From Histomonas meleagridis 2922-C6/04-290x (taxonomy: Eukaryota; Protista; Parabasalia): a stretch of 64,000 nt of DNA. The stretch is from the NCBI GenBank assembly GCA_020184695.1, contig JAANOX010000271.1, positions 310,001 to 374,000 on the forward strand, read 5' to 3'. The notes beneath the pieces were generated by a model that did no database searches, was not told the origin of the DNA, and saw nothing but the letters and a program-made list of their open reading frames with translations. Made by a program: the position numbers and the translations under genes. Each line of letters begins with the position of its first letter. Position 1 is the stretch's first letter. Positions 8,550 to 64,000 of this stretch are shown one piece after another.

Positions 8550-9596
8550 ATGATGGCGAAACGTTCCATCAGCCTTGATCACTGCTTATTTACACACAGC
8601 GTAGCAATCGATACAACATATGGCGAACATAATTACATCAAAAAAATTAACCAATACAAACTCCTCACTGAAATTGGAAAAGGTTCATATTCTAAAGTTT
8701 TTCTTGCACTCAATACCGAAACATCAGAACTATATGCAGCAAAGCGGATTCGAATTCGTCAATTAGCAAAGACAGCAATTGGTGTTTCTCTTCTTCAACG
8801 AGAAATTGGAATGATGAATAAGCTTCACCATAAAAATATTGTTGGTCTTCATGAAGTAATTTTTGTCAAAGAAAATCAATCAGTTTACCTCATTATGGAT
8901 TACGCTGATTGCGGGAATTTAACCAAACATAAATTCAATTCAAACGAGATTCGTTATATATTCAGTCAAATTGTAGAAGGTGTTTCTTACTTACATAAAA
9001 ATGGAGTTGTTCACCAAGATATAAAACCACAGAATATTCTTATGCGTCATGATGGAACTCCACTCATCACCGATTTCGGAATTGGTCACTCCTTTGAAAG
9101 CTGTGCACGAGTTGTTGGCACACCAGCCTATCAAGCTCCTGAAGTGATCGATCGGTCTCCAAATGATCAAGATTATGACCCTGGCAAAGAAGACATTTGG
9201 TCACTTGGCGTTACACTGTACGTTCTTTCCTTCGAAAAACTTCCATATCAGGGTGAAAGTGTTTTCGAAATTGTTCGATCAATTATCACAACTGAACTCA
9301 CACCTCCTAAGACATGTGACCCACTTCTGTGGGACATGATAATGCATATGCTTAAGCCTGATATCCATGACAGATATAATATCGATCAAGTAAGGAAGCA
9401 TCCATATGTAACAGGTGCACAGGCAGTGCGAATACAACTTAAACCACCAATAACTCCAAATGATAACCCATTGCTACCAGTCAGGGAAATCAGTGGTGAA
9501 GTTTGTGGTGAAGGATATGTATTTGCGGTTGGAACAAGAAAACTTAAGCAGCCGCGGTCAGAATCTATAATCCCAAAGTTTTCTTCGTTTGGGTGA
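8550..9596 (+). CDS. Ser/Thr protein kinase, CAMK group (CaMKK/LKB1-like), non-RD
   Basis: IGKGSYSKV, AAK, HQDIKPQN, DFG, GTPAYQAPE, DIWSLG. Confidence 0.93.
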   Translation: MMAKRSISLDHCLFTHSVAIDTTYGEHNYIKKINQYKLLTEIGKGSYSKVFLALNTETSELYAAKRIRIRQLAKTAIGVSLLQREIGMMNKLHHKNIVGLHEVIFVKENQSVYLIMDYADCGNLTKHKFNSNEIRYIFSQIVEGVSYLHKNGVVHQDIKPQNILMRHDGTPLITDFGIGHSFESCARVVGTPAYQAPEVIDRSPNDQDYDPGKEDIWSLGVTLYVLSFEKLPYQGESVFEIVRSIITTELTPPKTCDPLLWDMIMHMLKPDIHDRYNIDQVRKHPYVTGAQAVRIQLKPPITPNDNPLLPVREISGEVCGEGYVFAVGTRKLKQPRSESIIPKFSSFG

Positions 9597-9657
9597 TGTT
9601 TGATTTGCGGTGTTTGCTGTTTGTTCATTAAAATTGATTTTGATATTTGTTTTTTAT

Positions 9658-35250: not shown

Positions 35251-35544
35251 GGTAGTAAACCATTAGTTAACTTCATTAACACCTCAAAAGGTTTTCGATT
35301 TGTGATAAATTGCCACAAATAATCGTTGCTGAATGGGAATTTGTTGCAAGTTTATTATTTGAACCGAGTGAATATATCGTTTGTTCTTTTTATAAGGTTC
35401 CTGTAAAATTTGGACGACTTATTGTAGAAGAGGAATCTGAATTAAATTTTTCGTTTGTACTTTATATTTTTTTCACGAAGTAAATTTACTATTTCTATGT
35501 AACCTTTTTGCTGTGCAATTTGAGTCGCAGTAAAATATTGCTAA

Positions 35545-35740
35545 AACATATTTCAAATTATTAAAACATATTCCAAATTATTCAAATAAATAGTTTCTGC
35601 ATTAACATTAATTCCTCTTTATCTAAAAGTAATTTTGCTATTTCTATATTATTATTTTTAACTGCTATATGAAGTGCTGTTTCAAATTAAAAAAACATAT
35701 TACAAATTATTAAAACATATAAAAAATTATTAAAATAATT
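35545..35740 (-). pseudogene. Isolated ankyrin module (35592-35683, 1-nt deletion) flanked by 20-bp minisatellite spacers
   Basis: Minus strand ETALHIAVKNNNIEIAKLLLDK..; near-copy of 36591-36683. Confidence 0.8.
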
Positions 35741-36297
35741 TTTTTTTATATTCCGAGTTAAACTCACTGTCATCAGTAACTTCAAGTACTCCCTGAAAAC
35801 GTTTCATTTGAAGAAACAAACATATAATTTAATTATTTCTTTTTACTACACGTTAGACTTGTTTGGATATTATTAAGCAACATCGTAATAATAACAGAGA
35901 TTCATATTTCATACATATAGATTTTTCTCTATGGTTTTTTTACAACAAGAAATTACCCTTTGTCCGATCAAAAATCAATCAAAATCTATCGGGGAAGACG
36001 ATACATTCAATTCCTTTCAAATATTGATCGTTCATTTCTGATTGCCCAAAAATATATATGGATAAAAAAAGTGAAATTTAGAACACCATGAAACAAATTT
36101 TAAAATTTGCTTGCATTTCCAGACATATTCAAACAAAGGGTAATTAAATCATATATGTAATTTTTTATAAACTCGATTATTCATTGAGATGAAGTGGATC
36201 ATTTGGATTTAGGTTCAAACATTAATCAAACAAATTTTTACAACTGAATGTTAAATAAAAATCAATAAAACTTTTATGAAAGTTAGAATATGTAATG

Positions 36298-36298
<1 letters not shown>

Positions 36299-36342
<44 letters not shown>
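36299..36342. repeat. (TA)22 microsatellite
   Basis: Direct reading. Confidence 0.97.
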
Positions 36343-36345
<3 letters not shown>

Positions 36346-36481
36346 TTCCGGAAATTACTTTTTGTCCTTGGAAATAAATTAGGTAATGAGAAATTTTGAA
36401 TTTTTTCCAAAAAATCTTCGATTTTTTCAAGTAAACCTCAGAAAAACTAACGTACAAAATTTAACGATTCGAGTATATATT

Positions 36482-36590
36482 GAAAAATATTCTAAATTAT
36501 TAAAACATATTCCAAATTATTAAAACATATTTCAAATTATTAAAACATATTTCAAATTATTAAAACATATTTCAAATTATTAAAATGAAT
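36482..36590. repeat. 20-bp minisatellite (TTCAAATTATTAAAACATAT)n inside an ankyrin spacer
   Basis: About 5 tandem copies with minor variants. Confidence 0.9.
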
Positions 36591-37915
36591 AGTTTTTGCA
36601 TTAACATCAATTCCTTCTTTATCTAAAAGTAATTTTACTATTTCTATATTATTATTTCTAACTGCTATATGAAGTGCTGTTTCAAATTATTAAAACATAT
36701 TTCAAATTATTAAAATGAATAGTTTTTGCATTAACATCAATTCCTTTATCTAAAAGTAATTTTACTATTTCTATATTATTATTTCTAACTGCTATATGAA
36801 GTGCTGGATTATATTTTATAATAAAAATTTAAATCGTATTTTAAAATATCAAATTGTTTTAATGAAATTTCAATAAAATTTTCAAACACTTCTCTTTAAA
36901 TTAATATATTTATGATTAATAAGGTAGTTAAAAAATTCTTCCTTAATAGAAATCTCTGAAATCTCCAAAAAATTTAGTGAAATTTTATTATTTCCGAGGA
37001 AATATAAAAAAATAAAAATATTTCCTGTTTTAATAGAATTGATGATATGATTCTTATTGATAATCATTCCTTCTTCTTTTAAAAATGAAAGAAGATCAAA
37101 ATTATCATGTAAAATACATTCTTTTCCTAATTCTTCTAAATTATTATCAGGATTAATTTTATTTTCATAAAGGTATTTAAAGATATCATTTCGATGAAAC
37201 ATAATTGCTGTTTCATATGCATTTTCAAATGATGAATGATTTTGTTCACATAAATGAATGATTTCTTCATTCCCACCTGCAACAGCATATTTACCTGTGT
37301 TTATTACATTTGCTCCATTCATAAGTAAATATTTAAAACATTTAACTGAAGAAAAAAATGCTGCATAATCAATTAATGTAACATTTGGTTTGTTAATAAA
37401 TGAATATCTTTCATAAAGTGATGGTTCAATTATTTGATTAAAATTAAAATTTGTTTGTGATGACATTTCTTGAAGTTTTTTTACTTCATCATTACGAATT
37501 ATTGATGCGATTTTATTTGGATTGTGCCCATTCTTAACATATTTCTTATGAAGTTCAAAATTTTCAGAAAGATCTTTGAAATTATTTTTATTTTTGAATT
37601 TAATCCTTTGAGATTGCAGTTTTATGAATTCTTCTTCTGAAACATAATGTATATAAAAAGGATTATTTTTATTTTGAATAATTTTTTTGATTAGATTAAT
37701 TTACTTTCAATCATTTTTTCAAGAAGATAATTTGATTCTTCGTTATTAATTGATAACAAAAATTGAGTAACAACATTAATTAAGGTATTATTCGATTTTA
37801 TTTCTGCTTTCTGTAAATACTTGATGCATAATTTTTCAAATCCTTTAAAAACAAAATATGAATAAATAATTCGTGAAAAACCTGTACACAGACAACAAAA
37901 ATTCAGATAAATCAT
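36591..37915 (-). pseudogene. DUF3447/ankyrin gene, frameshifted near 37690, followed by spacer-separated ankyrin modules
   Basis: IEPSLYERYSFIN..TLIDYAAFFSSVKCFKYLLMN (DUF3447-type); upstream part in another frame; modules at 36721-36810 and 36591-36683. Confidence 0.8.
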
Positions 37916-41478: not shown

Positions 41479-41821
41479 TCTTTCGATTAATATACAATAT
41501 TCAATAGCTAATAATGTTGGAGAACATAAACAAGAATGTAAATCCATTCCATATGGCTCAGCAATAAATGGTTGAAAAGGCATTAATTCATTTGGATATT
41601 TCGAAATGTATTTAGAATATTTTGATAATATATCATTTGAATTATAAATTGGTGTTAATGGATACCATAAATTTTTCGATTTTAATTTATAGATTATACC
41701 ATTTTTTGATGAAGAAGATATTGAAATTGCATCTAAATGAGTTTTAATGATTTTTATATCTGTAATTCGTTTTTCCCTAAAAACTTTATTAAATGATTTA
41801 TATAATTTTGGCTTAAATAAT

Positions 41822-42326
41822 AATTCGATATTAATTTTTGATTAATTTTTTCTGTTGTATTATTATAAATTTCTATGCGATCAAAGATTAACGTTGAAAT
41901 AAAATGAATAAATATGAAATATATTAATTTATTGTTTTGTTCTAAATCAAAAATACCAATTGTGTTAGCAATCATATTAATCATTTGATCTTTATTTTCG
42001 ATAAATCCAAGACATAATTGCATTAATACAAATAAATGTGAAAATATTTCATCTTTCTTTTCAGTTAAAAAGATCTTTAATCCAAAACAACCTCGTAACA
42101 TTTGATGATCATTTAAATCCATTGCTAATAAAATTCGTTGAGGATTTACAGAAGTTAATAACCAAAAATTGTCGAAATTTTTATTAAAAGTTTTACTTAT
42201 TATCATTTTAATGTTATTTTGTGCTTGTATTAATAAAGATTTTAATAATAATTGTGGCATAACAAATAGAGAAATCGAAGCTTTATCGAAAAATAATGAA
42301 CATTTTAAAATTTTACTTTTAGTAGA
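41822..42326 (-). repeat. 505-bp inverted repeat, right arm (native UBR coding segment)
   Basis: Reverse complement of 40974-41478; 343-bp spacer between the arms. Confidence 0.93.
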
Positions 42327-43559
42327 ATCAGTTAAGATACCATCAGTATAAATATCTTTAAAATATTTTTCACATATAAGAAGTGTATTTGTAATATCCA
42401 AATTTATTTTTATGTTTTCAACAATTTCATTATAATCTCTTGAAAATGATTTAAAATAATAAATATATGAAACAAATTCATTTTCTTGTGAACTTTGAAA
42501 TATATTAGTGAATAAAATTGCATGCGTATCTAAATAGATATCAACTAATCCATCTATTAAACGTTGATAATCATTACTAAAATAATCACATGATAAGAAA
42601 TTTTTTAATCCTTGTGTAACGTATGAATAAAAGAATACAATGCCTTTGCTTCTTAAGTTTGGATCAAGTGAAAATGATAGTTGATATTTTTGATATGCTT
42701 TCATATCATTCAAATGTTAACAAAAATCAAAATTATATTTTTTATTAATTTCAATCATTGCATATTGTTTAAAAAATTGAAAATGTAAATCAACTAAAGA
42801 ATAAATTTTGTTTTTTCGTTGTTTTACTCTTATGTCATATACATGTTTATATATATCAAAAATTTTATTAAGATATACATAACCAAAATCAACTTTGAAT
42901 TGAATATCATTAACAAAGTGCTGAAGCAAATCATTAATAACAGAAATAACATCTTTACTTGACTGTAAATAACTATCAATAATACCACCAAATATTTCGT
43001 TTTTGCTCATGGATGAAATAATTAAATTTCGATATTTATCACCAATTTCACAAAATCGAAGAAGCCATTTTAACAACTGAATCGCTTTGGATGGCTCATT
43101 GTTAATAAGATTTAGCAGTTGTGCCGATGCAATATCAAAAATTTTAGGAAGGAGTTCTGAGATTGGAAAAGGAATTTCATTTCCTTGTTGGGGCTTATGA
43201 AGTTGACAAGATGATTTCCATTGATATTGGTCACCACAGTCACAATTTCCAATGAGGGTAGTATCTATAAAAATTGAATGTCCATCATGATTGCTATTTA
43301 AATAACACTTTAAACAAATACAATTAGAATCATCATGTGAACATTCCTTGCAATCAAATGATATTTGGGGAACTGACCATGCCTCCTGGCATTTGGAAAT
43401 ATTAGAAATTGAAAGAAGATATTGGATAAAACTATCAAAATTGGGAAACTTTAGGTACTGACAAAGAAAAGATTCCCATGATTGAATTGTATCGCCTATA
43501 TTCATATTCATGAAGGCAGCAAAAAAAAGTTTTAGGGGGGATAGTATTTTGGGTAAAAC

Positions 43560-43990
43560 CTGTATAAAAAATCCATTTTGCGAAGCTTTCATAAATGATG
43601 TTCTAAATAATTTAATTTATTTCCAAATATTTGGAAATTGATATTTCAAATATATAAAATAATTATCAAATAAAAAATTCGAATATCTTTTGAATCAACA
43701 TCAATTCCTTTTTGATTATAAGGTAATTTTTTCCTTTTTTTTTTTACAATCTCAAATTAAGAATACAAATTCCAAATACTGTTCCATTTTTTATACGAAT
43801 ATCAACTTGTTCAAGCAAAAAGTCAAATATTTCGAAATTGAAATCTATTGGAAAAAAACAATTCGATAAATTCAATAGAATTTTTCATTTTTTTTTGATT
43901 TTATTCAAATAAATATAATAAAAGATATAATTTCATGAAATTCATTTGCAGTTTCATATGCAAAATGAAATGTGTTTAACTGTTTTTGAT
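43560..43990 (-). pseudogene. Degenerate DUF3447/ankyrin remnant with two spacers
   Basis: Minus strand fragments AYETA.EFH, FEIFDFLLEQVD, NQKGIDVDSKD and RTSFMKASQNG; spacer 43605-43684. Confidence 0.72.
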
Positions 43991-44357: not shown

Positions 44358-47300
44358 TTACACCCACACGAAACTACCGAACCGTCCCATATTACAATTA
44401 TCGCAATTTTCTATCAGATGATTTACCAATTCGAACGGGAAATAGTTATCCATTTTATCAGTATCTTCTCCTACGTCTACCGCCAATTTTGTGATTTTCT
44501 CATCGAAAGAACTTTCGTCGATTTCCAAAGCCTTTAAATGTAATACGAATTCATTTTTCTTTTGGAACAATGCGTTTGCGATTGTATTCCACGTTGCAGT
44601 GAACGCTCCGTTCATTACGAACAAAGGCAAAAAAGCTTTAAATTGTGGAATCAAAGGCATATAACCATTCGCAATTCCATTTTTTATAAATCCTGGAAAA
44701 CAAAATCGTTTTCTATCTTTCATAATCATGAAATTAGAATATTGATACAAAACATTTTTGTTTTGACCGAAAATCAAATTAAATATTGAAGAAGAACTTA
44801 AATGTGATGCGAAACTTTGTCGCATGAATAAGAAATCTGTTTTATTACCATTACAACCTTTAATGAACCAATTAATAAAGAGATTTCTTGGTGAATCGAT
44901 TAAATGTTTCTCATAAAATGATTTTGGTGAGATATCTTTTGTTAATGAATCATCAAATGCATTTTTTAATAATGAATTTATATCAAAAGGTTTTATAATG
45001 TTTTGTAATGATTTTATTGGTGGTGAAAACATCATTAAAATCGAAGGATGAATTAAAAATGATTTAGGATAAAATACAAATGGATTCCTCGTGATAGAAC
45101 TTGGGAATTTCTTAAGACAATGATCAATAATATTTGCTAATAAATATTCATTTTGTGCATATTGATATAATTTAGATGAAACTAAATTATAAATTTGGAA
45201 TTTCCCAGTCGAAAAAAAACATTTCATTTTAGCTTCTTTAGTACCATCTGCAATTAAATATGATTTTATAATTCGATTTGATGATTTAGGCATATTAATA
45301 CCATTTAATGAGAAATATTTTTCATTTTTACTAATTTTATATTCGGTCATAAAATAGGGTGGGTTTGCCTGGCAGAATTCGTAAAGTTCTGAATTTTCGA
45401 TGTTATTATAAATCGAATTATAATATTGAATAATAGCATCGACTGAATTATCAAGTTTTTGGATATCATTTTTACATTTATTTATGAAACTAAAGAATAT
45501 TTCGAATTCTTTTTGTATATTAGAGTTAATATTTAAGATTATATTATTAATTTCTTTAATTACGTTTAAATTTTGTTGATTATTTTTTATCATTTGATTC
45601 CGAATATGATTAAAAGTTAATAAAAACAAAGTTGGATTTGACTTAAAAATGTTTTGGATGAAAGTTGTTGGTATTTCTAATGAAGCGTTTAATATATATT
45701 TAATCCACGGTATTAATATATATTTATTTGTTTTATTTAAATGATTTAATTGTGAACAAAACGTGTTCGCAAATAATGGATTCTTTCGAATTAATATTAA
45801 TATCATTGATATATAAATGTTATCATATTTCGATGTCGTATCATTTAATTCATCTAAAAGATATAAAATGATTTTAGTTTGATCATGTTCAATAATATCT
45901 TCTTCTTTTAATTGTATTAATATAGTTAGCCATTGTTTTTTAGTGAATTTATTATTAGAAAGTTCATAAGCATATTGATAATTACATAAAAATATCGATA
46001 AGTTAATACGTAATAAATTATATAAATTTGAATTTTCGGGTTTTTTTAAGAATTTATATATTCGTTTTAATGATATATTATTAATTGGAATTGTTTTATA
46101 TTCTTTTGTTGACTTTTGATATTGGATTAAACCTTCTTTAATACATCCAACTTGTATTAAAAGTTTTGACATTAAATTTTGATTTTGTTGAATCATTTCA
46201 TTAATTTCAGGTTTTAATAAGTTTAAAACTTGATTATTATTGATTAACATATAATCATTAAATATTTTATTTTGTAATATAATTCTCGATAAAATAATTT
46301 CATTTTTATCAAGAGTTTTCATTAATTGAAATTTATTTTTATGTATAATATCTTTAATATTAATGTTTTGTTGATTATAAACTTTTATCATATCTAAAAT
46401 TTCAGTATTAATAATTTGTTTGTTTACTATAGGTAAAAAAGTTTGAGAAACAAATGATGTTAATTGACTATTTGATTTAGAAGGTATATCATGAGAAATA
46501 GGTAATAACACTTGTGTAATATTTGATTTCGGATGTTCAAATATTAATTCATTTATGTTATCATATATCGAAAGTTCTTGATTATTTACTATGTTTCGAA
46601 GTTTTAATAATATTAAAAAATATATATCTTCATCATAAAGATTATCAAAGTAATACCCTTTCGATATAGAATAATTAGAAATTTGATGAAATAAAACGGC
46701 GTTTGTTAAATTCGGATGTTCTGTTTTAAAGATACCTAAGGAATCTTCCCATAAGTTTAAGTCTTCAAGATATTTCATGTTTTTATATAAGTTTAATTGT
46801 GGATATGGGACTTGATTTATATATTCAGGAAAATTAGTAAAACAATCAGAAAGTGTTGAATTTGGAAATTGATGAATATAATAATTGACAAAATTATTTA
46901 TATTCATATTAACCAAATAACTTAAATTTAATGTTATGAATTTCTTTAAATTTTGTTCATCGATATCATATAATAAAAAATGTATTGTTTCGGGTAAAAA
47001 AAGTTTTAAAAAGATATGTGAATGAATTCGTTCTGGTTGAGAAAACCAATCGAAAGTAAATAAATCATTTATTATATTATTACTTGTAGTAATTGTTAAT
47101 ATTTTTGTGATGGAATAATTTGATAATAATTCTTTATTGGTATAATTCATTAAAATTTTATGTATATATTTATTCATAGGAAATTTAATATGATTTAAAT
47201 CTAAAATAATTTCTTCTTCATTAAATGGAAAAAATGCTTCAAGAATTATTAAAATTTTATTAATGATTTTAAACTCATATTCATTCTCATTTAACCAATT

Positions 47301-50300
47301 TGATAAAGTAGCTAATGATGAAGAAGTTATAATATTACTTAATTCTTTATTATTTTCATCTTTAAAATATGACTTTAAATCTTTTAAAATTATATTTGAA
47401 AAATAAAATCGATTTAAATTTATGATAATTTTTAATGAGTTTTTATATTCTTCATTAAATTCTTCTGTTATATTCGATTTAAAAAAATTAGAAGGTAATA
47501 TAAGTGATGGAATAAAAGGTTTTAATTGTTGAAAAAAAGGTTTTAATAACAAAATAATTTTAATAAGAATTTCAGTTTTAATTTGTATTATTGGTTGTTT
47601 ATCATTAAATTTTTCTTCTAACTTCTCTATTAATTGTTTAATAATATCAAAAAATATATTATAATCTTCTTCTTTAATTATTACTAATAATTTCTTTATA
47701 ATTAAAGGAATGTTTTTCATTAAAATTAATATGTCAATATCAGATTGATTAAAAAAACTAATTAAAATTTTCAAAAATATTTCAAATAATTTATAATTAG
47801 TTTTAATATTATTATTATTTTCTGGTTGATATTTATCAAATATATTAAAAAACAATGAAATTATTTGTTTTTGATATTTAATTTTTAAAGATTTATTTAA
47901 AAACATTTTTACATAAATATTAATTAAATATTTTAAAAAGTCATTAACTGTTTTATATGTTAATAATTCCAATATATTTAATGTTTGTTTCATAAAATAT
48001 GGTCTATTAACTAATAAATTTATTAAAGTTTCTTTCATTTGTAAAGGGAATTCAACATTTGTAAAGTTAATTATATGTTTTGATATATTACAATATCGAA
48101 TAATACTTTGTACACCAGAAATTGAAGTAATTCCATAAAATAAACTTAACGCACTTGCTTTAGATGATGAAAAGATTAATGGCGAAGCATTTAAGTCAGA
48201 AACAACTACATTTTTATTATATCCTAAACTAGCCGATAAATAATGTATTACAAAATCAGTAAAAATATCACTTCGATGATATTTAGTAAAACCAGTTTGA
48301 AAATCGATTTTTTCTTTTGGTGGAAATTTCTTAAATCGTTCATTAAATATATTTAAGATAAATATTCTTGTAGATACTGATATTGTATCTAATAATAAAT
48401 TCGACTTTAATAAGTCATAAATTTTATTAATTTTATCAGTCTCTAACATAGATATAAATAAAATAAAATGTTTAATGAATTCGGGATAATTAAATAAGTT
48501 GTTTGAATGTAATAATATTGTTAAAAGTTCATTATAAAGATAACCAAAAAGATCATTATCTAAATTAAATAAATCATAATAATTTAATGGTAATAATGAA
48601 TTAGAAATATCATTTAATAAACTTGGCTTATATATAGTACGAATATTTTTCCTAAAAATTAATAAAAACTTTTTAACTAAATTATATAAATTATTAAAAT
48701 CAAATTCATTTCGATTTAAGTTATTTAAAATAGTTGAAAAAATCGAAAAAAATCCGGATAATATAAAATCGAAATATTGATTTTTTAAATCCAAATTTAA
48801 TTCTTGTTCTAAAAGATGTTTTATAAAGATGTTTCTAAATTGAATACATTCTGGATGAGTAATAATTTTTTTTAATAATATTAATAAATCGTTTGAAAAA
48901 TCTAATTTTATTCTATTAAAAAATACTTCATATAATTCATTTGGTGCTATTACACCTATTATATAAATTGGAACATCTAATAACAATGGAATTTGCATAA
49001 TTTTTAAATGGAAATCAATAATTGTTAAACATAATTGATGTAATTCAATGTTTTGATCTTTTTTATGTATAATTTTGATGATTTTATATAAAATTGTAAT
49101 ACATTTTTGTATAATAGTTCTAGAAACTCTTGAATTTCTAAATTGTTCATATATCATATTAATAGTTTTAATGACCCATTCTATATGTTTTATATATTTA
49201 TCAGAATAAGTTGATTTAATAATGAATTTTAATATTAATAAATCTTCAGGCGGTATCATTTGTAATGAATTATCTAAAAATACTTCATACTTTATAGCAA
49301 ATTCTTGTGGTATTGAAGGATAACCTAAAAATTCTTTTTCCTTCTTAAGTTTTTTTAAAAAATATGGAACAAATTGAAACATTTTTTCTTGATGAAGTTT
49401 AGCCATAATATTACCCCATAATTGATTTGATTCATTCGGTAAAAAAATTAATAATTTCGAAAATAATTTTAAGATAAATTTAATTGTGAAATATGAATTT
49501 AATTTAGGATCATAAAAATCTGAAAGTTTTATAAATTGTTGAATTTCTTCGGAATAAATTGATACTTGTAAACTCGTCATTAATTTTAATAATTGTGTAA
49601 TTAATAATGTAGGATCACCAATATCATTAAATGATTGTATAAATAAAAACTCATATTTAAAACTTGGAAATTTGGTTAATATTTTTGGTAATTGTGGAAT
49701 TATTGATTTCCGTGTTTCTTCAAAATCACTTTTAACTCCACAATTTACTTCGCAAAATTTTATTGTCTTTAATGCTATATGTCGAATAGTTCTTTGAGGA
49801 GAAATTGCTAATTTAACAAATGCTCTATAAATTTTTTGTACTGTTTTTTTATTATAATTCCTATTAAATATATGTCTTTTAAATATATCTAATACAAATT
49901 CATAATATGTTTGACAATAAAATGTTAAAGTTTTTAATAAATGTATAAATATTATACAATTTGTAGATACTTTATCAATACAAAATTCGATTGTTTGTAA
50001 TACAGAATATATTAATCTTGGATGAAATGACATCGTTTTAGTTATATATTTCATGAAATTAATGATATCTATATCTTCAATATTTTCGATGATTGAAGTT
50101 CCATATTTTTGTTTTATTAATAAAAATGCATATTGTTGTGGTGGGTTTGTAAATTTAATTGATTCATTTAGAAATGAATCATCGAAATTATTTAAATATC
50201 TAAAAATTTTTATAACATATTCATCGTTAACTAATTTCTCGAATTTATATTTCGTAATATAATTCATAATATAATGAAAAAAACTTTTTAATTGTTCTAT

Positions 50301-51734
50301 TGTTGGGTTTTCTATTCTTTTAATTGCACGAAATAATATCTCTATATCTATATTTAAGTTTTCATTTTCTGGTTGAATCTCTTCATATATATTTAAATGT
50401 GATACATTATCAATTGTCGTTAAAGGATATTTAACAAATAAATCAGGACATTTATCAATTAAAGGTTTTTTTACACTTGTTTTCTCTTTTAATACCGCAA
50501 CAACAAATCTTTTTTTTATAGGTTCTTTAAGTAAATAAATCCCTTGAAAAAACTCTGCAGGAAATTCACTTAAAAGTTGTATTGTTGCATATTTATAACG
50601 TGGTGATTCAAGTATCGGAAAAAACAAATTTATCCAAATTTTTATTGATTCGTTTTTATGTTTAAATAATTGATAAAAACGTATAGCAATAAATGATATA
50701 CTTGAAGTTAAAAATTGTATTTTAATTAATGATTGGAAAATATTTGATAAAGAAAATGATAAATTCTCTAATGCATTAACTAAATCTTTAGACTGATGTA
50801 AATTAGCATGAATTTTCAAAAAAAGTCTTAAAATAAAATAATCCAATAAATTAAAACTTTTTGTTTTAAAACATAACATTATTAACTTAACTAAATATGG
50901 AACAAATTCTTGTGGAATCGCATTATATTTCTTATAAACTTCTTGAACAATAAATAACATTAAATTCCCAATGATTTCAATAGCTTCAAATTTCATCATC
51001 GAATCGAATTCTTCAGTAATTATTTTAAAAAAATTTAGAAAATATATTTGACTTGGAATCATTTTAATTAATAAATTATTAATATGTGAATGATATACTT
51101 GATTTTTATCTTGTGGAAACAATAATTTAAAATTCGAAATCAATAAAAAATTAATAACTTCAGGTTTTTGTTGTGAGAAAACAGAAGAAACAAAAATTTG
51201 TATGAAATTAAGGATTTTCCGATGAAACAAATTATTATCAATGTTTTCTTGTATATAACAAACCAATTTATCTGTTGAATCATTTGATTTCCGGACATTT
51301 CCTGCTATATCTAATATATATGATATATATTTAATTAATCGTTCAATTATTTCATTTTCTTTATGTAAAGATGAAATATTTGGATAATTGTTATTGCCAG
51401 GATTTAAAATCCATTGTATTATCTTTAATAATGTTATGTTATTATCTATCCATGTTTCAATATTAAATCCTTTTTCTAAATCAATTTCTTCTAATTCATT
51501 TTTCATGTTCTCAAAACATCGAACAAATTGTTCAAATAATTCTAATTGTAATATACAACATTGTTGATAAACAATTCCATTTACAAAATGTTTATACGCT
51601 TCGAATATGCAATTAAAAATTCGAGGAGGCTGTTTAAAGTCACTTAAAAATGCACAAAAATTGGGTGAAATAGATTTAAAAAAAATATGTGGTGAATCAG
51701 GATTAGTTATTAAGATTTTAACAAATGATTCCAT
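44358..51734 (-). CDS. TRRAP/Tra1-like PIKK pseudokinase (main ORF)
   Basis: 2458-aa helical solenoid ending in a PIKK-like domain (FLFMRQSFASHL) without DxxxxN/DFG, and a FATC-like tail ending FVWV. Confidence 0.68.
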   Translation of the reverse strand: MESFVKILITNPDSPHIFFKSISPNFCAFLSDFKQPPRIFNCIFEAYKHFVNGIVYQQCCILQLELFEQFVRCFENMKNELEEIDLEKGFNIETWIDNNITLLKIIQWILNPGNNNYPNISSLHKENEIIERLIKYISYILDIAGNVRKSNDSTDKLVCYIQENIDNNLFHRKILNFIQIFVSSVFSQQKPEVINFLLISNFKLLFPQDKNQVYHSHINNLLIKMIPSQIYFLNFFKIITEEFDSMMKFEAIEIIGNLMLFIVQEVYKKYNAIPQEFVPYLVKLIMLCFKTKSFNLLDYFILRLFLKIHANLHQSKDLVNALENLSFSLSNIFQSLIKIQFLTSSISFIAIRFYQLFKHKNESIKIWINLFFPILESPRYKYATIQLLSEFPAEFFQGIYLLKEPIKKRFVVAVLKEKTSVKKPLIDKCPDLFVKYPLTTIDNVSHLNIYEEIQPENENLNIDIEILFRAIKRIENPTIEQLKSFFHYIMNYITKYKFEKLVNDEYVIKIFRYLNNFDDSFLNESIKFTNPPQQYAFLLIKQKYGTSIIENIEDIDIINFMKYITKTMSFHPRLIYSVLQTIEFCIDKVSTNCIIFIHLLKTLTFYCQTYYEFVLDIFKRHIFNRNYNKKTVQKIYRAFVKLAISPQRTIRHIALKTIKFCEVNCGVKSDFEETRKSIIPQLPKILTKFPSFKYEFLFIQSFNDIGDPTLLITQLLKLMTSLQVSIYSEEIQQFIKLSDFYDPKLNSYFTIKFILKLFSKLLIFLPNESNQLWGNIMAKLHQEKMFQFVPYFLKKLKKEKEFLGYPSIPQEFAIKYEVFLDNSLQMIPPEDLLILKFIIKSTYSDKYIKHIEWVIKTINMIYEQFRNSRVSRTIIQKCITILYKIIKIIHKKDQNIELHQLCLTIIDFHLKIMQIPLLLDVPIYIIGVIAPNELYEVFFNRIKLDFSNDLLILLKKIITHPECIQFRNIFIKHLLEQELNLDLKNQYFDFILSGFFSIFSTILNNLNRNEFDFNNLYNLVKKFLLIFRKNIRTIYKPSLLNDISNSLLPLNYYDLFNLDNDLFGYLYNELLTILLHSNNLFNYPEFIKHFILFISMLETDKINKIYDLLKSNLLLDTISVSTRIFILNIFNERFKKFPPKEKIDFQTGFTKYHRSDIFTDFVIHYLSASLGYNKNVVVSDLNASPLIFSSSKASALSLFYGITSISGVQSIIRYCNISKHIINFTNVEFPLQMKETLINLLVNRPYFMKQTLNILELLTYKTVNDFLKYLINIYVKMFLNKSLKIKYQKQIISLFFNIFDKYQPENNNNIKTNYKLFEIFLKILISFFNQSDIDILILMKNIPLIIKKLLVIIKEEDYNIFFDIIKQLIEKLEEKFNDKQPIIQIKTEILIKIILLLKPFFQQLKPFIPSLILPSNFFKSNITEEFNEEYKNSLKIIINLNRFYFSNIILKDLKSYFKDENNKELSNIITSSSLATLSNWLNENEYEFKIINKILIILEAFFPFNEEEIILDLNHIKFPMNKYIHKILMNYTNKELLSNYSITKILTITTSNNIINDLFTFDWFSQPERIHSHIFLKLFLPETIHFLLYDIDEQNLKKFITLNLSYLVNMNINNFVNYYIHQFPNSTLSDCFTNFPEYINQVPYPQLNLYKNMKYLEDLNLWEDSLGIFKTEHPNLTNAVLFHQISNYSISKGYYFDNLYDEDIYFLILLKLRNIVNNQELSIYDNINELIFEHPKSNITQVLLPISHDIPSKSNSQLTSFVSQTFLPIVNKQIINTEILDMIKVYNQQNINIKDIIHKNKFQLMKTLDKNEIILSRIILQNKIFNDYMLINNNQVLNLLKPEINEMIQQNQNLMSKLLIQVGCIKEGLIQYQKSTKEYKTIPINNISLKRIYKFLKKPENSNLYNLLRINLSIFLCNYQYAYELSNNKFTKKQWLTILIQLKEEDIIEHDQTKIILYLLDELNDTTSKYDNIYISMILILIRKNPLFANTFCSQLNHLNKTNKYILIPWIKYILNASLEIPTTFIQNIFKSNPTLFLLTFNHIRNQMIKNNQQNLNVIKEINNIILNINSNIQKEFEIFFSFINKCKNDIQKLDNSVDAIIQYYNSIYNNIENSELYEFCQANPPYFMTEYKISKNEKYFSLNGINMPKSSNRIIKSYLIADGTKEAKMKCFFSTGKFQIYNLVSSKLYQYAQNEYLLANIIDHCLKKFPSSITRNPFVFYPKSFLIHPSILMMFSPPIKSLQNIIKPFDINSLLKNAFDDSLTKDISPKSFYEKHLIDSPRNLFINWFIKGCNGNKTDFLFMRQSFASHLSSSSIFNLIFGQNKNVLYQYSNFMIMKDRKRFCFPGFIKNGIANGYMPLIPQFKAFLPLFVMNGAFTATWNTIANALFQKKNEFVLHLKALEIDESSFDEKITKLAVDVGEDTDKMDNYFPFELVNHLIENCDNCNMGRFGSFVWV

Positions 51735-52644
51735 TAATAAAATCGTTCGCTTCTTTTGAACAAATGGATCTAAATAAAAATATTGATATATGGATAAAAG
51801 TCTTCCTAAAATATTGGCTATTAATGGATCGTTTATATGAAATATTTGGGATTTTCATGATTGAACATATACAACGATAATAATTTTGTATAATATGTAT
51901 GAACCTTAAATCTTCTGGAATTGATTTCTGAACTTTACCCAAAAGTGACGTTTGAAGTGGAGTTGTTTGACGGTTTTTCGTGATGAGCTTCGAGATTAAT
52001 TTTAATGATTTGGAAATAATTATCTCTGTTTTTTGAAATATTGTGACATCGTTTTTAAATTGAAGACCTCCAAGTGAAATATAAAGGAAAACATCGATTA
52101 AATTAGATATATAATCAAATGTAGCATTTGAAATATGATATGGAATAATTCTTATAAGAAGTAATATAAGCTGTAAATCAGAGGCCTGAATCGACTTTGA
52201 AGATTCTCGTAAAAAAAGAAGGATTTGATTTAAAAATTTTGGATAAAGATTTGGTTCGCCATGTGTTGATGTTAAAAAATGATCACTGAGAAATATAAAA
52301 GCTTGAATACGAGTAGCCCAATGTCTTGAAGTTAAGAAATTAAAGACAAGTGGCTCTAAAACGCTTGAAGTTTGAACATTAAAAAAACTTGGTCGAAGAA
52401 AACGCATGGAATAAATAAGATGCGACTGCAGTACTAACTCAACTTCCGATAGTATGTTATGATTTTGGACATATCGAGTAAGATAAGTATTATATAAAGA
52501 AAAGATGTTTGGATAATGTCCTAATAATTGTGATTCCAAACTAAAAACTAACAAATCTTCCATATTTTTTATCAAATCATTGGTGAGAATTGGTAGTTCA
52601 TTGCTCTCAAATAAACGAAAAACTTGATTACCATTTAGTTCCAT
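51718..52644 (-). CDS. Probable N-terminal part of the TRRAP-like gene, separated by one frameshift
   Basis: 308-aa helical ORF overlapping the next ATG; the downstream frame is open from about 51854. Confidence 0.6.
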   Translation of the reverse strand: MELNGNQVFRLFESNELPILTNDLIKNMEDLLVFSLESQLLGHYPNIFSLYNTYLTRYVQNHNILSEVELVLQSHLIYSMRFLRPSFFNVQTSSVLEPLVFNFLTSRHWATRIQAFIFLSDHFLTSTHGEPNLYPKFLNQILLFLRESSKSIQASDLQLILLLIRIIPYHISNATFDYISNLIDVFLYISLGGLQFKNDVTIFQKTEIIISKSLKLISKLITKNRQTTPLQTSLLGKVQKSIPEDLRFIHIIQNYYRCICSIMKIPNISYKRSINSQYFRKTFIHISIFLFRSICSKEANDFINGIIC

Positions 52645-53344
52645 TTGGAATGAAAACCGTTTATTTTTTATTCACTTTTTTGGAGAAACTTTTCTCCATA
52701 AATTGAAACGTGTTTAGGCTGAAGCTTGAATGATTTCTGCAAATAAAAAATTTTGTCATAAAAACCTTCGACTCTAACTTTTAAAAAATGATTTTAGAAA
52801 ATAATTTTTATGAAAAAGTTGAAATATCTAATGGGACATTATCTTCTTTCGCCTGAACAACGAGAAAATTGGTATTTATGCATTAATAATGATATCAACA
52901 GAATATACAGATTTACAACAAATTGGAACTCTAGCAAATGAATATGGTGATGATTGTTTCAAGAATCATATGTTATACGGAATTCCTTGCAAACATTTAT
53001 TAATTAAGAGAACGTAAGAAGATAAAATTCCTTAGTTAACATTGAATGACTCTCACCCTAGATGGATCAGTTCTATTAATACTTTTATCAACACTAAAAA
53101 CACAATTGAAATAATTAAAAAACAAAAAATAGATTCGAACGACTGGAGCTATTCTTCATGTATAGATAAACCCGAAAGGAATTTTACCTTTGTTGCTCGA
53201 TCCCAAATAATCATTATTCTTCGAAGAATCTTAAGTGGAGCTCTGAATACTTTAAATTGTGTAGAATACGAATCTGGAATGAACGAAGATATTTTACCTC
53301 TTTCAACATTTTTAATCACAGGAACGCCAAATCTCACCCAAGAA

Positions 53345-54463
53345 GAAATGATATCTTTCATTATATTTATGAGAATAAAATTATTATACTAAATAATATA
53401 GAAGAACTAGGAAAAAGATGTATCTTAAATTATAAGAATGAAATTCTTTCATTTCTCGAAAAAGAAGGTATGAAAATAAACAAATTTTTTATTAATAAGT
53501 TAATGGAAACTGGAAACACATTCCTTTTACAATATTTCCTTGAAAAAAGTACAGATTCATATGATTTTTGGGATATTTCAACCATTTCTATAAATGATGA
53601 ACCATTTAAATACTTGGTTGATGAAAAAATTATTAAAACTAATAAAAAAGTGATGATTTAATATATTTCGCATTTATTTTTTTGATTTCCTATTTCAACA
53701 TAATATTTGGTATTTATTTTAAACATTTAAAACACTAATTATGTATGCATTCGAAAAAGGAATAACCAAATTAGTTGAATTACTTCTCGAACAAGAAGGA
53801 ATTGATGTTAATGTAAAAGATATATATTTGTTCTGTTTCAAATTTGTTTTAAATATTTTGGTTCTCAAAATAATATTTGGTAATTGTTTAAATGATTTAA
53901 TACGGCACTTATTTTGGCATCAGAAAGAAATCGTCCAGAAATAGTTAAATTGCTTCTTAAACAAAAAGGTATTAATATTAATGCTAAAGATTTTTATTAA
54001 ATGCAATTAAAATTTATCATAATATTTTGATATTTTTAAGTAATTACTGGAAATTATTTGAATTGTTTTATACAGCTCTCATATATGCATCTGAAAAAGG
54101 TTTCACATAAATAGCTAAATTGCTTCTTGATCATGAAGGAATTGATGTTGATGCAAAAAATATTTATTTATTATAGTTAATATTTATTTGAATAGTTCAA
54201 AATTTCAAAATAATATTTGGAATTTATATATGTTATTTATTACAGCACTTATATATGCAACTAAGTATTGTAATAAAGAAATATTTAAATTACTTCTTAA
54301 GTGTAAAGGTATTAATTTTAATTGTAAGAAATAATTGTTTATTTCATTTAAAATACATTTTAATAACTTGATTTTTCAAAATAATATATGGAAATAATTC
54401 AAATTATTTAGAACAGCACTTTTTTATGCATCCGAGAATGGTTACACAGAATTTGTCAAATGA
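53345..54463 (+). pseudogene. DUF3447/ankyrin gene fragment plus an array of five ankyrin modules with 77-79-nt spacers
   Basis: RNDIFHYIYEN..ELGK..EGMKIN matches the paralogs; modules start at 53729, 53899, 54069, 54239 and 54410; stops at 54108 and 54461. Confidence 0.85.
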
Positions 54464-58697: not shown

Positions 58698-61142
58698 TTA
58701 ATTGTATTTCTGACGTTTCTTTCCTCCCTTTTGTTGTTGCTTGTTCTTATCTTCCACTGGTTTAATATGTGTGCGCCTTAATTCCACTGGAAGCTTATGT
58801 ACATCCTTCGAGTCATCATATGGTCCTCCGGTGACCACGGCCCATGGCGATGATTGCTTCTGCTCTTCGACACTATTTGTTGCTGCTTCTTCTTCAGTTG
58901 CAACTTGTTCTTCTTCGGCAACAACTGTTTCTGTCACTGCTGGTGTTTGTGGTGCAACTTCTTTCTTTTGTTGCTGCTGTTGCTGTTTCTTGTTCTTCTT
59001 TTGTTTCTTGTCTTCTTCAATTGGCTTTGCATGTGTGCGACGTAATTCAACTGGAAGTTTGTGTACGTCTTTGGAATCGTCGTATGGTTCGCCGGTGATG
59101 ACTGCCCATGGTGTGACTGTTGGCTGCTGGCTTTCAACATTTGGCTGTGGCTCTTCAACAACTTCTTCGGCTTGAATTTGTTCTTTTTCTTCATTAGCAA
59201 CTACTGATTCTTTAACTGGTGTTTCTTTCTTTTGTTGCTTTTGTTGCTTAGCATTTTGCTGCTTCTTCTTGTTCTTCTTTTGTTTCTTGTCTTCTTCAAT
59301 TGGCTTTACATGTGTGCGACGTAATTCAACTGGAAGTTTATGTACGTCTTTGGAATCGTCATATGGTTCGCCAGTGATGACAACCCATGGTGTTGCTACT
59401 GGTTGTTGTTCATTTTCAACTGTTTGATGAGGTTCTTCAACAACTTCTTCAGCTTTGACTGGTGCCTTTTCCTCTTCAACAGTAACAATTTCCTTAGCAG
59501 GTGCTTCTTTCTTTTGTTGTTTATGTTGCTTTGGCTTTTTGTTTGGCTTTTGTTGTTTTGGTTGCTTTTGTTGCTTTGGCTGTTGTTGTTGTTGTTGTGG
59601 CTTCTTATTCTTTTGCTTCTTGTCTTCTTCAATCGGCTTTACATGTGTGCGACGTAATTCAACTGGAAGTTTATGTACATCTTTGGAATCATCGTATGGT
59701 TCTCCATTGATTACTGCCCATGGTGTTGTTGCAACATGTTTTTGTTCATTTTCAATTGTTGGCTGAGGTACTTCAACAACTTCTTCAGCATGAACCGGTG
59801 CTTTTTCTTCTTCTTTAACAACAACTGGTTCTTTAACTGGCGCTGGCTTTGCCTCCTTCTTTGGCTGCTTCTTCACGTCCTCTGGTTGCATTTGAAGAAG
59901 TGATTCTGTTATTTGTGTCCATGGTGTGTTGGGTTTCTTTGGTTCTTCTTTGTGTGGTGGAGAAGTCTTCTTTTGTTTGTTTTGTTGTGCCTTCTTAGTT
60001 TGTTTTGGCTTTGTTTGATTCTTTGGTGCTTGTTTTTGATTTTCATTCTGTTTGTTTTGTTGCTTCTGTTGTGGCTGTTGTTGCTGTTGATTATTTGTTC
60101 GCTTTTCTTTTTCTTCAGTTGGCTTAAGATGTGTACGACGGAGTTCAACAGGAATTCTGTGGACAAATTTGGAGTCATCGTATGGCTCTTCTGATATAAC
60201 TGCCCATGGCTTTTGCTGTGGAACAGATTGTGGTTGGGATACTGTTTCAACAGGTTCAGTAACTTCTTCCTTTGGAGCTTCTGGTGCTGGTGATTGCTTC
60301 GTTTGTTGTTTTGGCTGTTTTGGTTGCTTAGGTTGCTTTTGCTGATTATTATTTTGCTTCTTATTCTTGTTTTTGTCCATTTCTTCAATTTGTTTGATAT
60401 GAGTACGACGAAGTTCAGGTGGAAGTTTGTGTACATCTTTGGAATCATCATATACATCTTCTTCTGATATGTTGGCCCATACTGAATTAGGTTTAACTGG
60501 TTGGGTTGGTTGCGTTGGTTGAACTTGTTGTGATTGTTGGGTTTGTGTTGTTCGTGGTTTACGTTGTTTGGGTGGTGATTTCTTGGGCTTAGAATCTTTT
60601 TGTGGTTGTGGTTTTGTCTTTTGTTCTTCTGTGGTTTGAGTGGCTTTGGGATTGTTGTGTGTACGACGTAATTCTGGAGGAGTTCTTCGAACTGCATGTG
60701 TATCATCATAAGGTGTAGATTGATTATTTAAGAGTGCTTGAATTGCTGTCCAATTTGAATTCTTCTCTGCAGTAGATTTGGATACTGTTGAACTAGGATT
60801 GGCTTCAGGCTTTGGTGTTTGTTTTATTATTTTTGGTTGTTGATGATTTTGATTTTGTTGAAGTTCTTGTGAGTTAAAGTTGTTTGTGAAATCAGACCAT
60901 GGAGTTTGTACAGTTTGTGGTTGTGGTTCTGTCTTCTGTTGGTTAATTTTATTGTTCGCTTGATTTACTCTTGGATGTGGAGTTGGCTTTCTAATAGGTT
61001 TCTTAGTTTGCTCTATATGTTCATTTTCGGTAAGCTTAACATCGCTCCATGTTGGTGCCTTTTTGGCTTGCATTGTCGAGAGTGGCCTCCACCATTCAAT
61101 TATTTCGGTTTGTCGGTTTGGCCAGACAGCATAAAATGTCAT
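58698..61142 (-). CDS. Low-complexity K/Q/E/P-rich protein with seven YDD..VH.LP.ELRRTH repeats
   Basis: 814-aa ATG ORF; repeats counted in the translation. Confidence 0.85.
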   Translation of the reverse strand: MTFYAVWPNRQTEIIEWWRPLSTMQAKKAPTWSDVKLTENEHIEQTKKPIRKPTPHPRVNQANNKINQQKTEPQPQTVQTPWSDFTNNFNSQELQQNQNHQQPKIIKQTPKPEANPSSTVSKSTAEKNSNWTAIQALLNNQSTPYDDTHAVRRTPPELRRTHNNPKATQTTEEQKTKPQPQKDSKPKKSPPKQRKPRTTQTQQSQQVQPTQPTQPVKPNSVWANISEEDVYDDSKDVHKLPPELRRTHIKQIEEMDKNKNKKQNNNQQKQPKQPKQPKQQTKQSPAPEAPKEEVTEPVETVSQPQSVPQQKPWAVISEEPYDDSKFVHRIPVELRRTHLKPTEEKEKRTNNQQQQQPQQKQQNKQNENQKQAPKNQTKPKQTKKAQQNKQKKTSPPHKEEPKKPNTPWTQITESLLQMQPEDVKKQPKKEAKPAPVKEPVVVKEEEKAPVHAEEVVEVPQPTIENEQKHVATTPWAVINGEPYDDSKDVHKLPVELRRTHVKPIEEDKKQKNKKPQQQQQQPKQQKQPKQQKPNKKPKQHKQQKKEAPAKEIVTVEEEKAPVKAEEVVEEPHQTVENEQQPVATPWVVITGEPYDDSKDVHKLPVELRRTHVKPIEEDKKQKKNKKKQQNAKQQKQQKKETPVKESVVANEEKEQIQAEEVVEEPQPNVESQQPTVTPWAVITGEPYDDSKDVHKLPVELRRTHAKPIEEDKKQKKNKKQQQQQQKKEVAPQTPAVTETVVAEEEQVATEEEAATNSVEEQKQSSPWAVVTGGPYDDSKDVHKLPVELRRTHIKPVEDKNKQQQKGGKKRQKYN

Positions 61143-62663: not shown

Positions 62664-63833
62664 ATGATAAACCAGAATCAGGATGAATGGGAAACATTTT
62701 TATCAATCAGACAAATAATTTTTAATTTAAACTCAAAAAATCTTGTTCAATCAATTAATTCCATAGCTAATAAATTTGACAATATTTATCCATTATCTTT
62801 TAATACAGTTATCATTCAAATGATATATATCAAACTTGTTACGAACATTAATGATATTGATATATACTTAGAATTTCTTAAAGGAATTGAAGCATTTGAA
62901 GAAAACCATAAAATCGAATCAAAAATCCTTCGAATGTTTTCACGTTTTCTTGATAAAAAGTCCTCATACGAATCATTTTATATCATGAATAAGATGAATG
63001 AACAAAATATTCTTGATTCAAAATATATTAAAAATTTGATCAAACCTAAAAATCCTTATTATTATGATTCTTTTTATGTAAAAATTGTAGAAAATGATTT
63101 TGAGCTTCATAAAAAATATGTTAAAGAAGGACATAATCCAAATAAAATTGCACAAATTATTCGAAATGATGAAATAGAAAAACTTCAAGAAATATTATCA
63201 CAAAATGGTTTTGATATCAATCAGACTATCAAACCATCACTTTATGAAAGATGTTCATTTATTAACCATTCGAATGTCTCGTTAATTGATTATGCAGCAT
63301 TTTTTTCAGCAGTTAAATGTTTTAGATATTTACTTATGAATAATGCTAATATAAAAAACACAGGAAAATATGCAATTGCAGGTGGAAATTTAGAGATAAT
63401 TCATTTATGTGAACAAAATCATTTATCATTTGAAGAAGCATCTGAAACTGCAATTCAATTTCATAAAAATGATATCTTTTATTATCTTTATGAAAACAAT
63501 ATCAAAGAAATTAAAACATTAGAAAAATTAGGAAGTAAATGTGTTTTATATTATAACTATGAAATTTTAACATTTTTAAAAGAGAAGGGAATGCAGATTA
63601 ATGATGAAATCATTAATTCATCAGCACAACTTGGAAATTTATATCTTACGAAACATTTCCTTCAAAACAAACAAATCCCAAAAAATATATTATATTACTC
63701 ATTCGATTCTAAAAACATTGAATTTTTTAAATATATTTTGAAACAAGAAGGAATTGATATTAATGCTGAAACTATTTATTTGAAATATATGAAATTTATT
63801 TTAATAATTTGGTTTGAATATAATTTATTTTGA
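62664..63833 (+). CDS. DUF3447-type ankyrin-repeat protein; the ORF runs into a spacer and stops
   Basis: GHNPNKIAQIIRNDEI, IKPSLYERCSFIN, SLIDYAAFFSAVKCFRYLL, QEGIDINA. Confidence 0.88.
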   Translation: MINQNQDEWETFLSIRQIIFNLNSKNLVQSINSIANKFDNIYPLSFNTVIIQMIYIKLVTNINDIDIYLEFLKGIEAFEENHKIESKILRMFSRFLDKKSSYESFYIMNKMNEQNILDSKYIKNLIKPKNPYYYDSFYVKIVENDFELHKKYVKEGHNPNKIAQIIRNDEIEKLQEILSQNGFDINQTIKPSLYERCSFINHSNVSLIDYAAFFSAVKCFRYLLMNNANIKNTGKYAIAGGNLEIIHLCEQNHLSFEEASETAIQFHKNDIFYYLYENNIKEIKTLEKLGSKCVLYYNYEILTFLKEKGMQINDEIINSSAQLGNLYLTKHFLQNKQIPKNILYYSFDSKNIEFFKYILKQEGIDINAETIYLKYMKFILIIWFEYNLF

Positions 63834-63879
63834 TGTTTTGATGTTTTAAAATAATATTTGGAAATTATTAAAATTATTT

Positions 63880-63972
63880 AAAACAGCACTTATGAAAGCT
63901 TCTATAAATGGTGATACAAAAATAGTCAAATTACTTCTTGAACAAGAAGGAATTGATATTAATCATAAAAAT
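63880..63972 (+). other. Out-of-frame ankyrin module between two spacers
   Basis: KTALMKASINGDTKIVKLLLEQEGIDINHKN (31 codons); the next spacer starts at 63973 and is cut by the window edge. Confidence 0.85.
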
Positions 63973-64000
63973 ATTTATTTGTTTTATTTAATATTGATTT

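Follow-up and report, generated by a model that had tools for sequence, protein, structure and literature searches.

The DUF3447/ankyrin gene at the end of the window

The window, by which we mean the whole 64,000-nt stretch of Histomonas meleagridis DNA analyzed here, is gene-dense, has a G+C content of 20-35% and uses the standard code. Near its right end, on the forward strand, an ORF of 389 aa runs without interruption from 62664 to 63833 and reaches ...QEGIDINAET at 63773. The exon-like, stop-free part of this ORF up to that point (62664-63773, 370 codons, ending ...GIDINAET) encodes an N-terminal DUF3447/ankyrin region. The N-terminal domain aligns over its full length with homologues, and the ORF matches the DUF3447 profile (PF11929) across residues 231-302 with 36.7 bits (cut-off 26.9, E=4e-9). 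What follows is a 106-nt sequence (63774-63879, +), referred to below as intervening sequence 1, that begins with ATTTATTTG and ends with ATTT; it equals a 109-nt spacer without its last triplet, and corresponds to the common 77-nt form enlarged by ~29 nt of additional 20-nt units. If this spacer were retained, the ORF would end at a TGA (63831-63833, +) after the addition of 19 hydrophobic residues. Its conserved internal block, AAAATAATATTTGGAAATT (63848-63866, +), occupies the most information-rich columns of an alignment of 80-nt spacers, and the TGG of this block (63859-63861) lies 21 nt upstream of 63880, where the codon predicted to be retained begins. Module 1 (63880-63972, +) is composed of that polar codon, AAA, and a 30-codon ankyrin repeat (translation, KTALMKASINGDTKIVKLLLEQEGIDINHKN), and scores 30.5 bits against Pfam Ank (PF00023; cut-off 21.1, E=3.9e-7) and 27.5 bits against Ank_2 (PF12796; cut-off 27.3). 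The first nucleotides of intervening sequence 2, which also begins with ATTTATTTG, occupy 63973-64000 (+).

These data agree with an earlier note on this DNA that had described the uninterrupted ORF, the 106-nt spacer, the start of the second spacer and the AAAATAATATTTGGAAATT block with TGG at -21. The same note had delimited a stop-free 93-nt module at 63880-63972; the module is indeed stop-free and an ankyrin repeat, but its left boundary is not defined by a stop, the frame being open from 63850. Position 63880 coincides with a boundary that was inferred independently (the spacer minus its last 3 nt). By itself, the 9-mer ATTTATTTG is weak evidence (15 copies in the window versus 7.8 expected); the whole grammar of modules and spacers is not chance.

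The DUF3447 gene is absent from the called genes of assembly GCA_020184695.1, the annotation of which skips it; the adjoining gene, encoding a WD40 protein, is at 361275-362330 of JAANOX010000271.1 in that assembly. In the numbering of this record, the analysis placed the window at 300001-364000. The same region, spacers included, is present in the assembly of a second strain (GCA_020186115.1), and both assemblies were derived from whole cultures.

The rest of the array is contained in a locus, L007, whose overlap with the window shows no differences and which continues for 8.3 kb beyond the window end. In it, the DUF3447 ORF is followed by nine stop-free ankyrin modules of 31 codons, eight of them past module 1, and intervening sequence 2 is a full 80-nt spacer. 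The modules are spaced mostly at 170 nt, with one interval of 167 and one of 150, such that their Thr codons start at window-equivalent positions 63883, 64053, 64223, 64393, 64563, 64730, 64880, 65050 and 65220. The spacers measure, in order, 109, 80, 80, 80, 80, 80, 60, 80 and 80 nt (the length of the sixth was corrected because module 5 has 29 codons). The last module ends ...GIDINVI and is followed by a TAA within TAAA (window-equivalent 65307-65309), and the next annotated gene, encoding a proteasome ATPase, starts ~650 nt after this stop.

Spacer anatomy and boundaries

The spacers are 8-13% G+C (8.5-13%) and contain many stops, compared with 27-28% G+C for the modules. Their lengths are mostly not multiples of three, with a mode of 80 nt, and spacers of 80 or 83 nt shift the reading frame. 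Over 43 junctions in intact-looking genes, we counted lengths of 80 nt (23 junctions), 83 nt (6), 60-63 nt (4) and 23-26 nt (3), and a few that were longer; the 80- and 83-nt forms account for 29/43 junctions in these genes versus 11/25 in decayed arrays, in which lengths are more scattered. Features common to the spacers are a 5' [A/G]TTTAT, a TATTTGG block whose TGG stands 21 nt upstream of the module, and a 3' ATTT followed by one polar codon. When 27 of the 80-nt spacers were aligned without gaps, they resolved into four 20-nt units of the form [A/G]TTT[A/G]T ... ATTT plus three bases, each unit repeating the 5' and 3' motifs of the spacer, with the highest information at TTTGG in unit 3. 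Self-matching of spacers peaks at lags of 20 and 40 (0.52 versus a background of ~0.38). A profile built solely from 24 spacers located outside the window and searched against the 64 kb matched intervening sequence 1 (63823-63881, E=7e-7), and all other matches with E<0.1 were at ankyrin-module junctions of three other copies of the family.

Several observations constrain where the spacers might begin and end. The triplet preceding the Thr/Asn codon is a stop at 0/43 junctions; most often it encodes Lys, Tyr, Glu, Arg, Asn, Gln or Trp. Of triplets drawn at random with the base composition of the spacers, ~9% would be stops (P ~0.02 for 0/43). The penultimate spacer triplet is TTT at 33 of the 43 junctions and TAA at one. 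At the 5' end, codon 2 of the spacer is a stop at several junctions. According to an enumeration, retaining between 0 and 9 nt would introduce no stop. At position 13349 of locus L005, a junction in the array that we call array a (see below) has 9 nt (K-V-R), compared with 26 nt at three paralogous junctions; the 17-nt difference starts ATTTATTT, and the flanking codons, K-V/I-R, are kept. With the most parsimonious boundaries, the removed piece would measure 17 + 20n nt (17, 37, 57 or, most commonly, 77). The simplest rule would be removal from the first spacer base through ATTT with one codon kept; this rule is inferred, and up to 9 nt may be retained, but it reproduces the division into 63774-63879 and 63880-63972. 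One junction in a second array (array b) and a close homologue (P0144) have 63-nt spacers that are in frame and stop-free, and some short in-frame forms might be tolerated unremoved. More distant homologues have ordinary contiguous 33-residue repeats.

Paralogues and metagenome relatives

Four paralogues, as well as relatives from metagenomes, follow the same grammar, and one gene can contain as many as 20 spacers. Unlike the window-end gene, the three further family copies within the window are decayed or truncated. A decayed paralogue (53341-54460, +) retains the last ~100 residues of the N-terminal domain and five modules 170 nt apart, the third and fifth of which contain stops. A 5'-truncated paralogue (35442-37577, -) has spacers of 40 and 60 nt, corresponding to exact 20-nt units, and a last module with its own stop, and it is interrupted by an insertion of ~0.9 kb and has lost 1 nt from one module. 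The fourth copy is a relic (43572-43774, -) in which only the end of one module, a TATTTGG-containing spacer and the beginning of a module remain. The ~0.9 kb between two modules of the truncated paralogue is unrelated sequence (35760-36480), and a (TA)22 microsatellite is located at 36299-36342.

Two further loci, L002 and L005, are located on H. meleagridis contig WSYJ01000186.1. L002 includes two family genes; in one of these, a run of three modules leads into an ORF of 505 codons whose start coincides exactly with that of a module. Annotated genes of 506 and 505 aa are present at 6001-9614 of this locus, with three modules and four 80-nt spacers between them; judging from this layout, the two annotated genes are probably one. 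L005 contains two arrays of ~21 modules each. The N-terminal domain of a gene annotated as 'caskin' (P0018) is interrupted by a transposon (L005 11266-12500) that has terminal inverted repeats and encloses a transposase-like ORF of 249 codons; the annotated 421-aa protein ends within the insertion.

Evidence from outside the H. meleagridis record comes from ENA metagenome contigs, for which the organism is unidentified. N-terminal domains encoded by L001, L003/L004 and L010 are 42-45% identical to that of the window-end gene, and these loci are arranged in the same way, down to spacers of 80 nt and a final module that carries its own stop. A scan of JGI metagenomes yielded one distant locus only. 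The L003 scaffold, which carries a family member, also contains an IS1595-type DDE transposase ORF (4380-5279).

Coding behavior of the modules

Array b (L005 17533-20744) stands behind an intact N-terminal ORF of 475 codons and contains 19 modules with 64% mutual identity, a median dN/dS of 0.52 and dS near saturation. Its 570 in-frame module codons include no stops, versus 60 and 89 in the other frames, and there is no frameshift; second codon positions vary least (0.25 versus 0.43 and 0.46). The spacers of array b are 61% identical to one another and the modules 64%, and since the spacers are as diverged as the modules, they must date back as far as the divergence of the modules and have coexisted with selection on the modules. 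The adjoining array a has six in-frame stops, frameshifts and irregular spacer lengths, and the N-terminal ORF of its gene is split by a transposon with its own transposase ORF. Array a is a natural control, in which the modules decay once the N-terminus is broken.

The window-end gene has no stops in 270 module codons. Its variable sites cluster in codons 5, 8, 9, 11 and 28 (permutation p<0.0002), codons 8 and 9 corresponding to positions that are randomized in designed ankyrin binders, whereas no clustering is seen in the spacers (p=0.23). For this array, dN and dS are similar (0.146 and 0.153), and identity is 0.867 among modules and 0.862 among spacers. The repeats of this gene are, by this measure, young, and the same pattern would be expected for a recently homogenized non-coding tandem repeat.

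Together, these patterns argue that the modules are expressed as protein, and they lend support to the suggestion of the earlier note, which had also advised inspecting the DNA beyond the window for further modules and a final stop, that the window-end gene is a live member of the system. The additional modules and the TAA are present in L007; all nine modules are stop-free, the N-terminal domain is full-length, and the other copies in the window are degraded. Both inferences depend on sequence integrity and the pattern of variation, in the absence of RNA, transcript, peptide or protein data. If the modules are translated, the spacers must be removed, since their stops and frame-shifting lengths would otherwise interrupt the reading frame. 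In the broad sense of the term, non-coding inserts between coding segments of one reading unit, the spacers meet the definition of intervening sequences.

Known mechanisms and competing explanations

At 35 junctions, we enumerated all donor and acceptor positions in the spacer plus 15 nt of flanking exon. An in-frame, stop-free GT..AG solution was found at 9/35 junctions, at inconsistent positions, and at none of the other 26. Several spacers contain no AG at all, and AG ends only 2/43. The 5' dinucleotide of the 43 spacers is AT in 28, GT in 8 and another in 7. CTAAC was found in 0/43 spacers and CTAA in the last 20 nt of 0/43. A canonical U2-type trichomonad intron was rejected because it fails both on GT/AG and on the fused branch/3' motif (RCTAACACAYAG or TCTAACH(1-2)AACAG). 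The best fixed pair of terminal dinucleotides at fixed offsets, TT..AC (23/35), is an artifact of the Thr codon. AT-AC (U12-like) boundaries break the frame, and no TCCTTAAC-like branch site was found. Structure-guided excision was not supported, as spacer folding (mean z -0.39) does not go beyond that of shuffled sequences; pairing between adjacent exons is marginal (-6.1 versus -5.5 kcal/mol, p=0.027). TA-bounded excision was discarded, a TA at the 5' boundary not being universal, as was translational bypass of the T4 gene 60 type, for which take-off and landing codons are unmatched (GAT, AAT or ACT before the gap, TTT before the resumed frame). Non-triplet indels and stops are incompatible with the spacer as a degenerate coding repeat. 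A snoRNA or other known RNA was also rejected, with no Rfam match at E<=1 over the whole array and only one tRNA in the window. Exact look-ups and word-indexed and exhaustive HMMER searches of protein databases found neither a spliced-length product nor a database protein with the sequence of this gene.

We consider it probable that the spacers are intervening sequences without GT-AG ends that are removed from RNA, although there is no transcript, cDNA or peptide evidence that they are. We observe the anatomy, its conservation and the coding behavior of the modules; removal, its exact boundaries and the machinery are inferred. On this model, the spacers would be removed from the transcript and the N-terminal DUF3447 domain would be joined to ankyrin exons of one repeat each. 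Removal would start right after module codon 30, at [A/G]TTTAT, and end after the conserved ATTT, so that a single polar codon is left in front of the Thr/Asn with which the next repeat begins. For the window-end gene, exon 1 and nine 31-codon exons would give a predicted product of 647 aa, and the distance from ATG to stop, 2,646 nt in the DNA, would shrink to ~1,944 nt on removal of all nine pieces. The inferred junctions produce repeats of 31 residues rather than the canonical 33, which counts against removal. The machinery cannot be recognition of canonical trichomonad GT...ACTAAC...AG signals. Either an undescribed kind of intron leaves the RNA, or just the first part of the gene is made.

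The latter is the main rival explanation, which we regard as unlikely but serious: the N-terminal ORF alone would be expressed, to the first stop in spacer 1, and the array would be an untranslated, ankyrin-derived tandem repeat of 170 nt, homogenized by unequal crossing-over or gene conversion. This would account for the fact that every close homologue stops a few codons at most from the first spacer, for dN resembling dS in the window-end array with spacers conserved like modules, for the absence of usable splice signals, and for an annotation that splits parts of these genes into separate ones or ignores them. It is difficult to reconcile with array b, which at 64% identity has no stop or frameshift in 570 codons while the array behind the transposon-broken N-terminus has six, or with codon-structured variation, arrays that close with terminal repeats and their own stops or with long C-terminal ORFs, and spacer lengths that are tightly held in intact genes (80/83 nt, 29/43 versus 11/25 in decayed arrays).

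Alternatively, the spacers could be ordinary spliceosomal introns whose boundaries we have misplaced, with cryptic GT..AG sites that vary by junction or a lineage-specific splice-site rule read by a normal spliceosome. Eight of 43 spacers do start with GT, one of them with GTATGT, the 5' [A/G]TTTAT resembles a degenerate trichomonad GTWYWD, and lengths of 17-23 and 77 nt are near, if not identical to, those of trichomonad type B (23-28 nt) and type A (56-196 nt) introns. We nevertheless judge this explanation quite improbable: 26/35 junctions lack an in-frame, stop-free GT..AG and several spacers lack AG, the fused branch/3' motif of all 63 validated Trichomonas introns is absent, and the +1 base is A in 28 spacers but G in only 8, a 3.5-fold excess of A. 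The idea that the spacers stay in the mRNA or DNA and are skipped otherwise, by ribosomal bypassing or by DNA-level excision or copy-number switching of the 20-nt units, seems to us barely credible. A fixed gap length like that of the phage T4 gene 60 bypass, the 20-nt length periodicity, and spacers of 60 and 63 nt that are in frame, some of them stop-free, fit such skipping, but take-off and landing codons do not match, up to 20 gaps per gene would be required, not every boundary is TA, and both whole-culture strain assemblies contain the spacers.

Beyond removal as such, we put at somewhat less than even odds the proposal that H. meleagridis and related parabasalids have an unrecognized class of intervening sequence of 17 + 20n nt, running from [A/G]TTTAT to ATTT with TATTTGG inside and lacking GT..AG and a branch motif, that occurs up to 20 times per gene and would be excised from mRNA by a recognition process unlike that of all validated trichomonad introns.

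Relation to known intervening sequences

Parabasalids are textbook examples of intron-poor eukaryotes. The introns of Trichomonas vaginalis and T. stableri fall into type A (56-196 nt) and type B (23-28 nt) (PMC12316389). All 63 validated T. vaginalis introns have GT/AG ends, a 5' GYAYGY/GTWYWD and the 12-nt 3' motif RCTAACACAYAG; no T. vaginalis transcript is reported to have multiple introns, and T. stableri genes are reported to have at most two (PMC12316389). According to the H. meleagridis genome paper, which does not mention ankyrin genes, the genome is 28.7% G+C, and ~5% of genes contain an intron, none of them more than one. Full-text literature searches on DUF3447 and on non-canonical Trichomonas introns returned no description of the arrangement reported here. 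Like trichomonad introns, the spacers are short and AT-rich, fall into narrow length classes, have motifs at a fixed distance from the 3' boundary and occur in parabasalid repeat-domain genes, among others. They differ in having A more often than G at +1, generally no AG at the 3' end, no CTAAC (absent in 43/43) and 4 to 20 copies per gene.

Resemblances to other systems are also partial. Euglenid nonconventional introns, which interrupt nuclear protein-coding genes, lack GT..AG and have variable borders, as the spacers do; the ends of euglenid introns are thought to pair, whereas the spacers have no folding signal above shuffles but have a conserved sequence block and a 20-nt repeat. Animal ankyrin genes can have one exon per repeat, with the insert at the same position and phase of every repeat, as here, an arrangement consistent in both cases with growth by tandem duplication of exon plus intron. 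Animal ankyrin introns, however, are canonical and long, and the spacers form a homologous sequence family of fixed length. Introner-like families likewise comprise many near-identical inserts per genome, but introners have canonical splice sites and enter unrelated genes, and in the 64 kb examined the spacers are found only at ankyrin junctions of one gene family. The internal eliminated sequences of Paramecium are, like the spacers, short AT-rich interruptions of coding sequence with periodic lengths; they are bounded by TA and are eliminated from the somatic DNA of an organism that has two types of nuclei, while the spacers are not uniformly TA-bounded and no nuclear dualism is known in Histomonas.

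If the spacers are removed, genes with 4-20 motif-less intervening sequences would alter the intron-poor picture of parabasalids. The T. vaginalis pipeline explicitly drops junctions without canonical motifs (PMC12316389), and since current intron pipelines discard such junctions, introns of this kind would be invisible to them; a blind spot in motif-filtered intron discovery would be exposed. It would also raise the question of what machinery recognizes an A/U-only element by its length and an internal block, and it would mean that an ankyrin family of a poultry pathogen is mis-annotated, its genes being truncated, split or missing.

Other features of the window

Several unrelated features of the window were recorded. 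On the reverse strand at 44358-52644, ORFs of 2458 and 308 codons overlap by 17 nt in different frames, with the junction near 51718-51734, the pair resembling a single, very large frameshifted gene of ~2770 codons; the 2458-codon ORF has no Pfam match. At 41754-43592 (-), ORFs of 291 codons (with a UBR-box zinc finger) and 319 codons share a frame and are separated by a single stop at 42717-42719. A Q/K/P-rich ORF of 814 codons (58698-61142, -), for which the annotated product has 791 residues, has no significant Pfam match; a motif resembling PYDDSKDVHKLPVELRRTH recurs in it approximately seven times. Between an aldo/keto reductase gene and a 1004-codon ORF, 5.4 copies of a 117-nt unit are repeated in tandem (1927-2566). 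The window also encodes an alpha-amylase for which the protein collection contains a 100% match.
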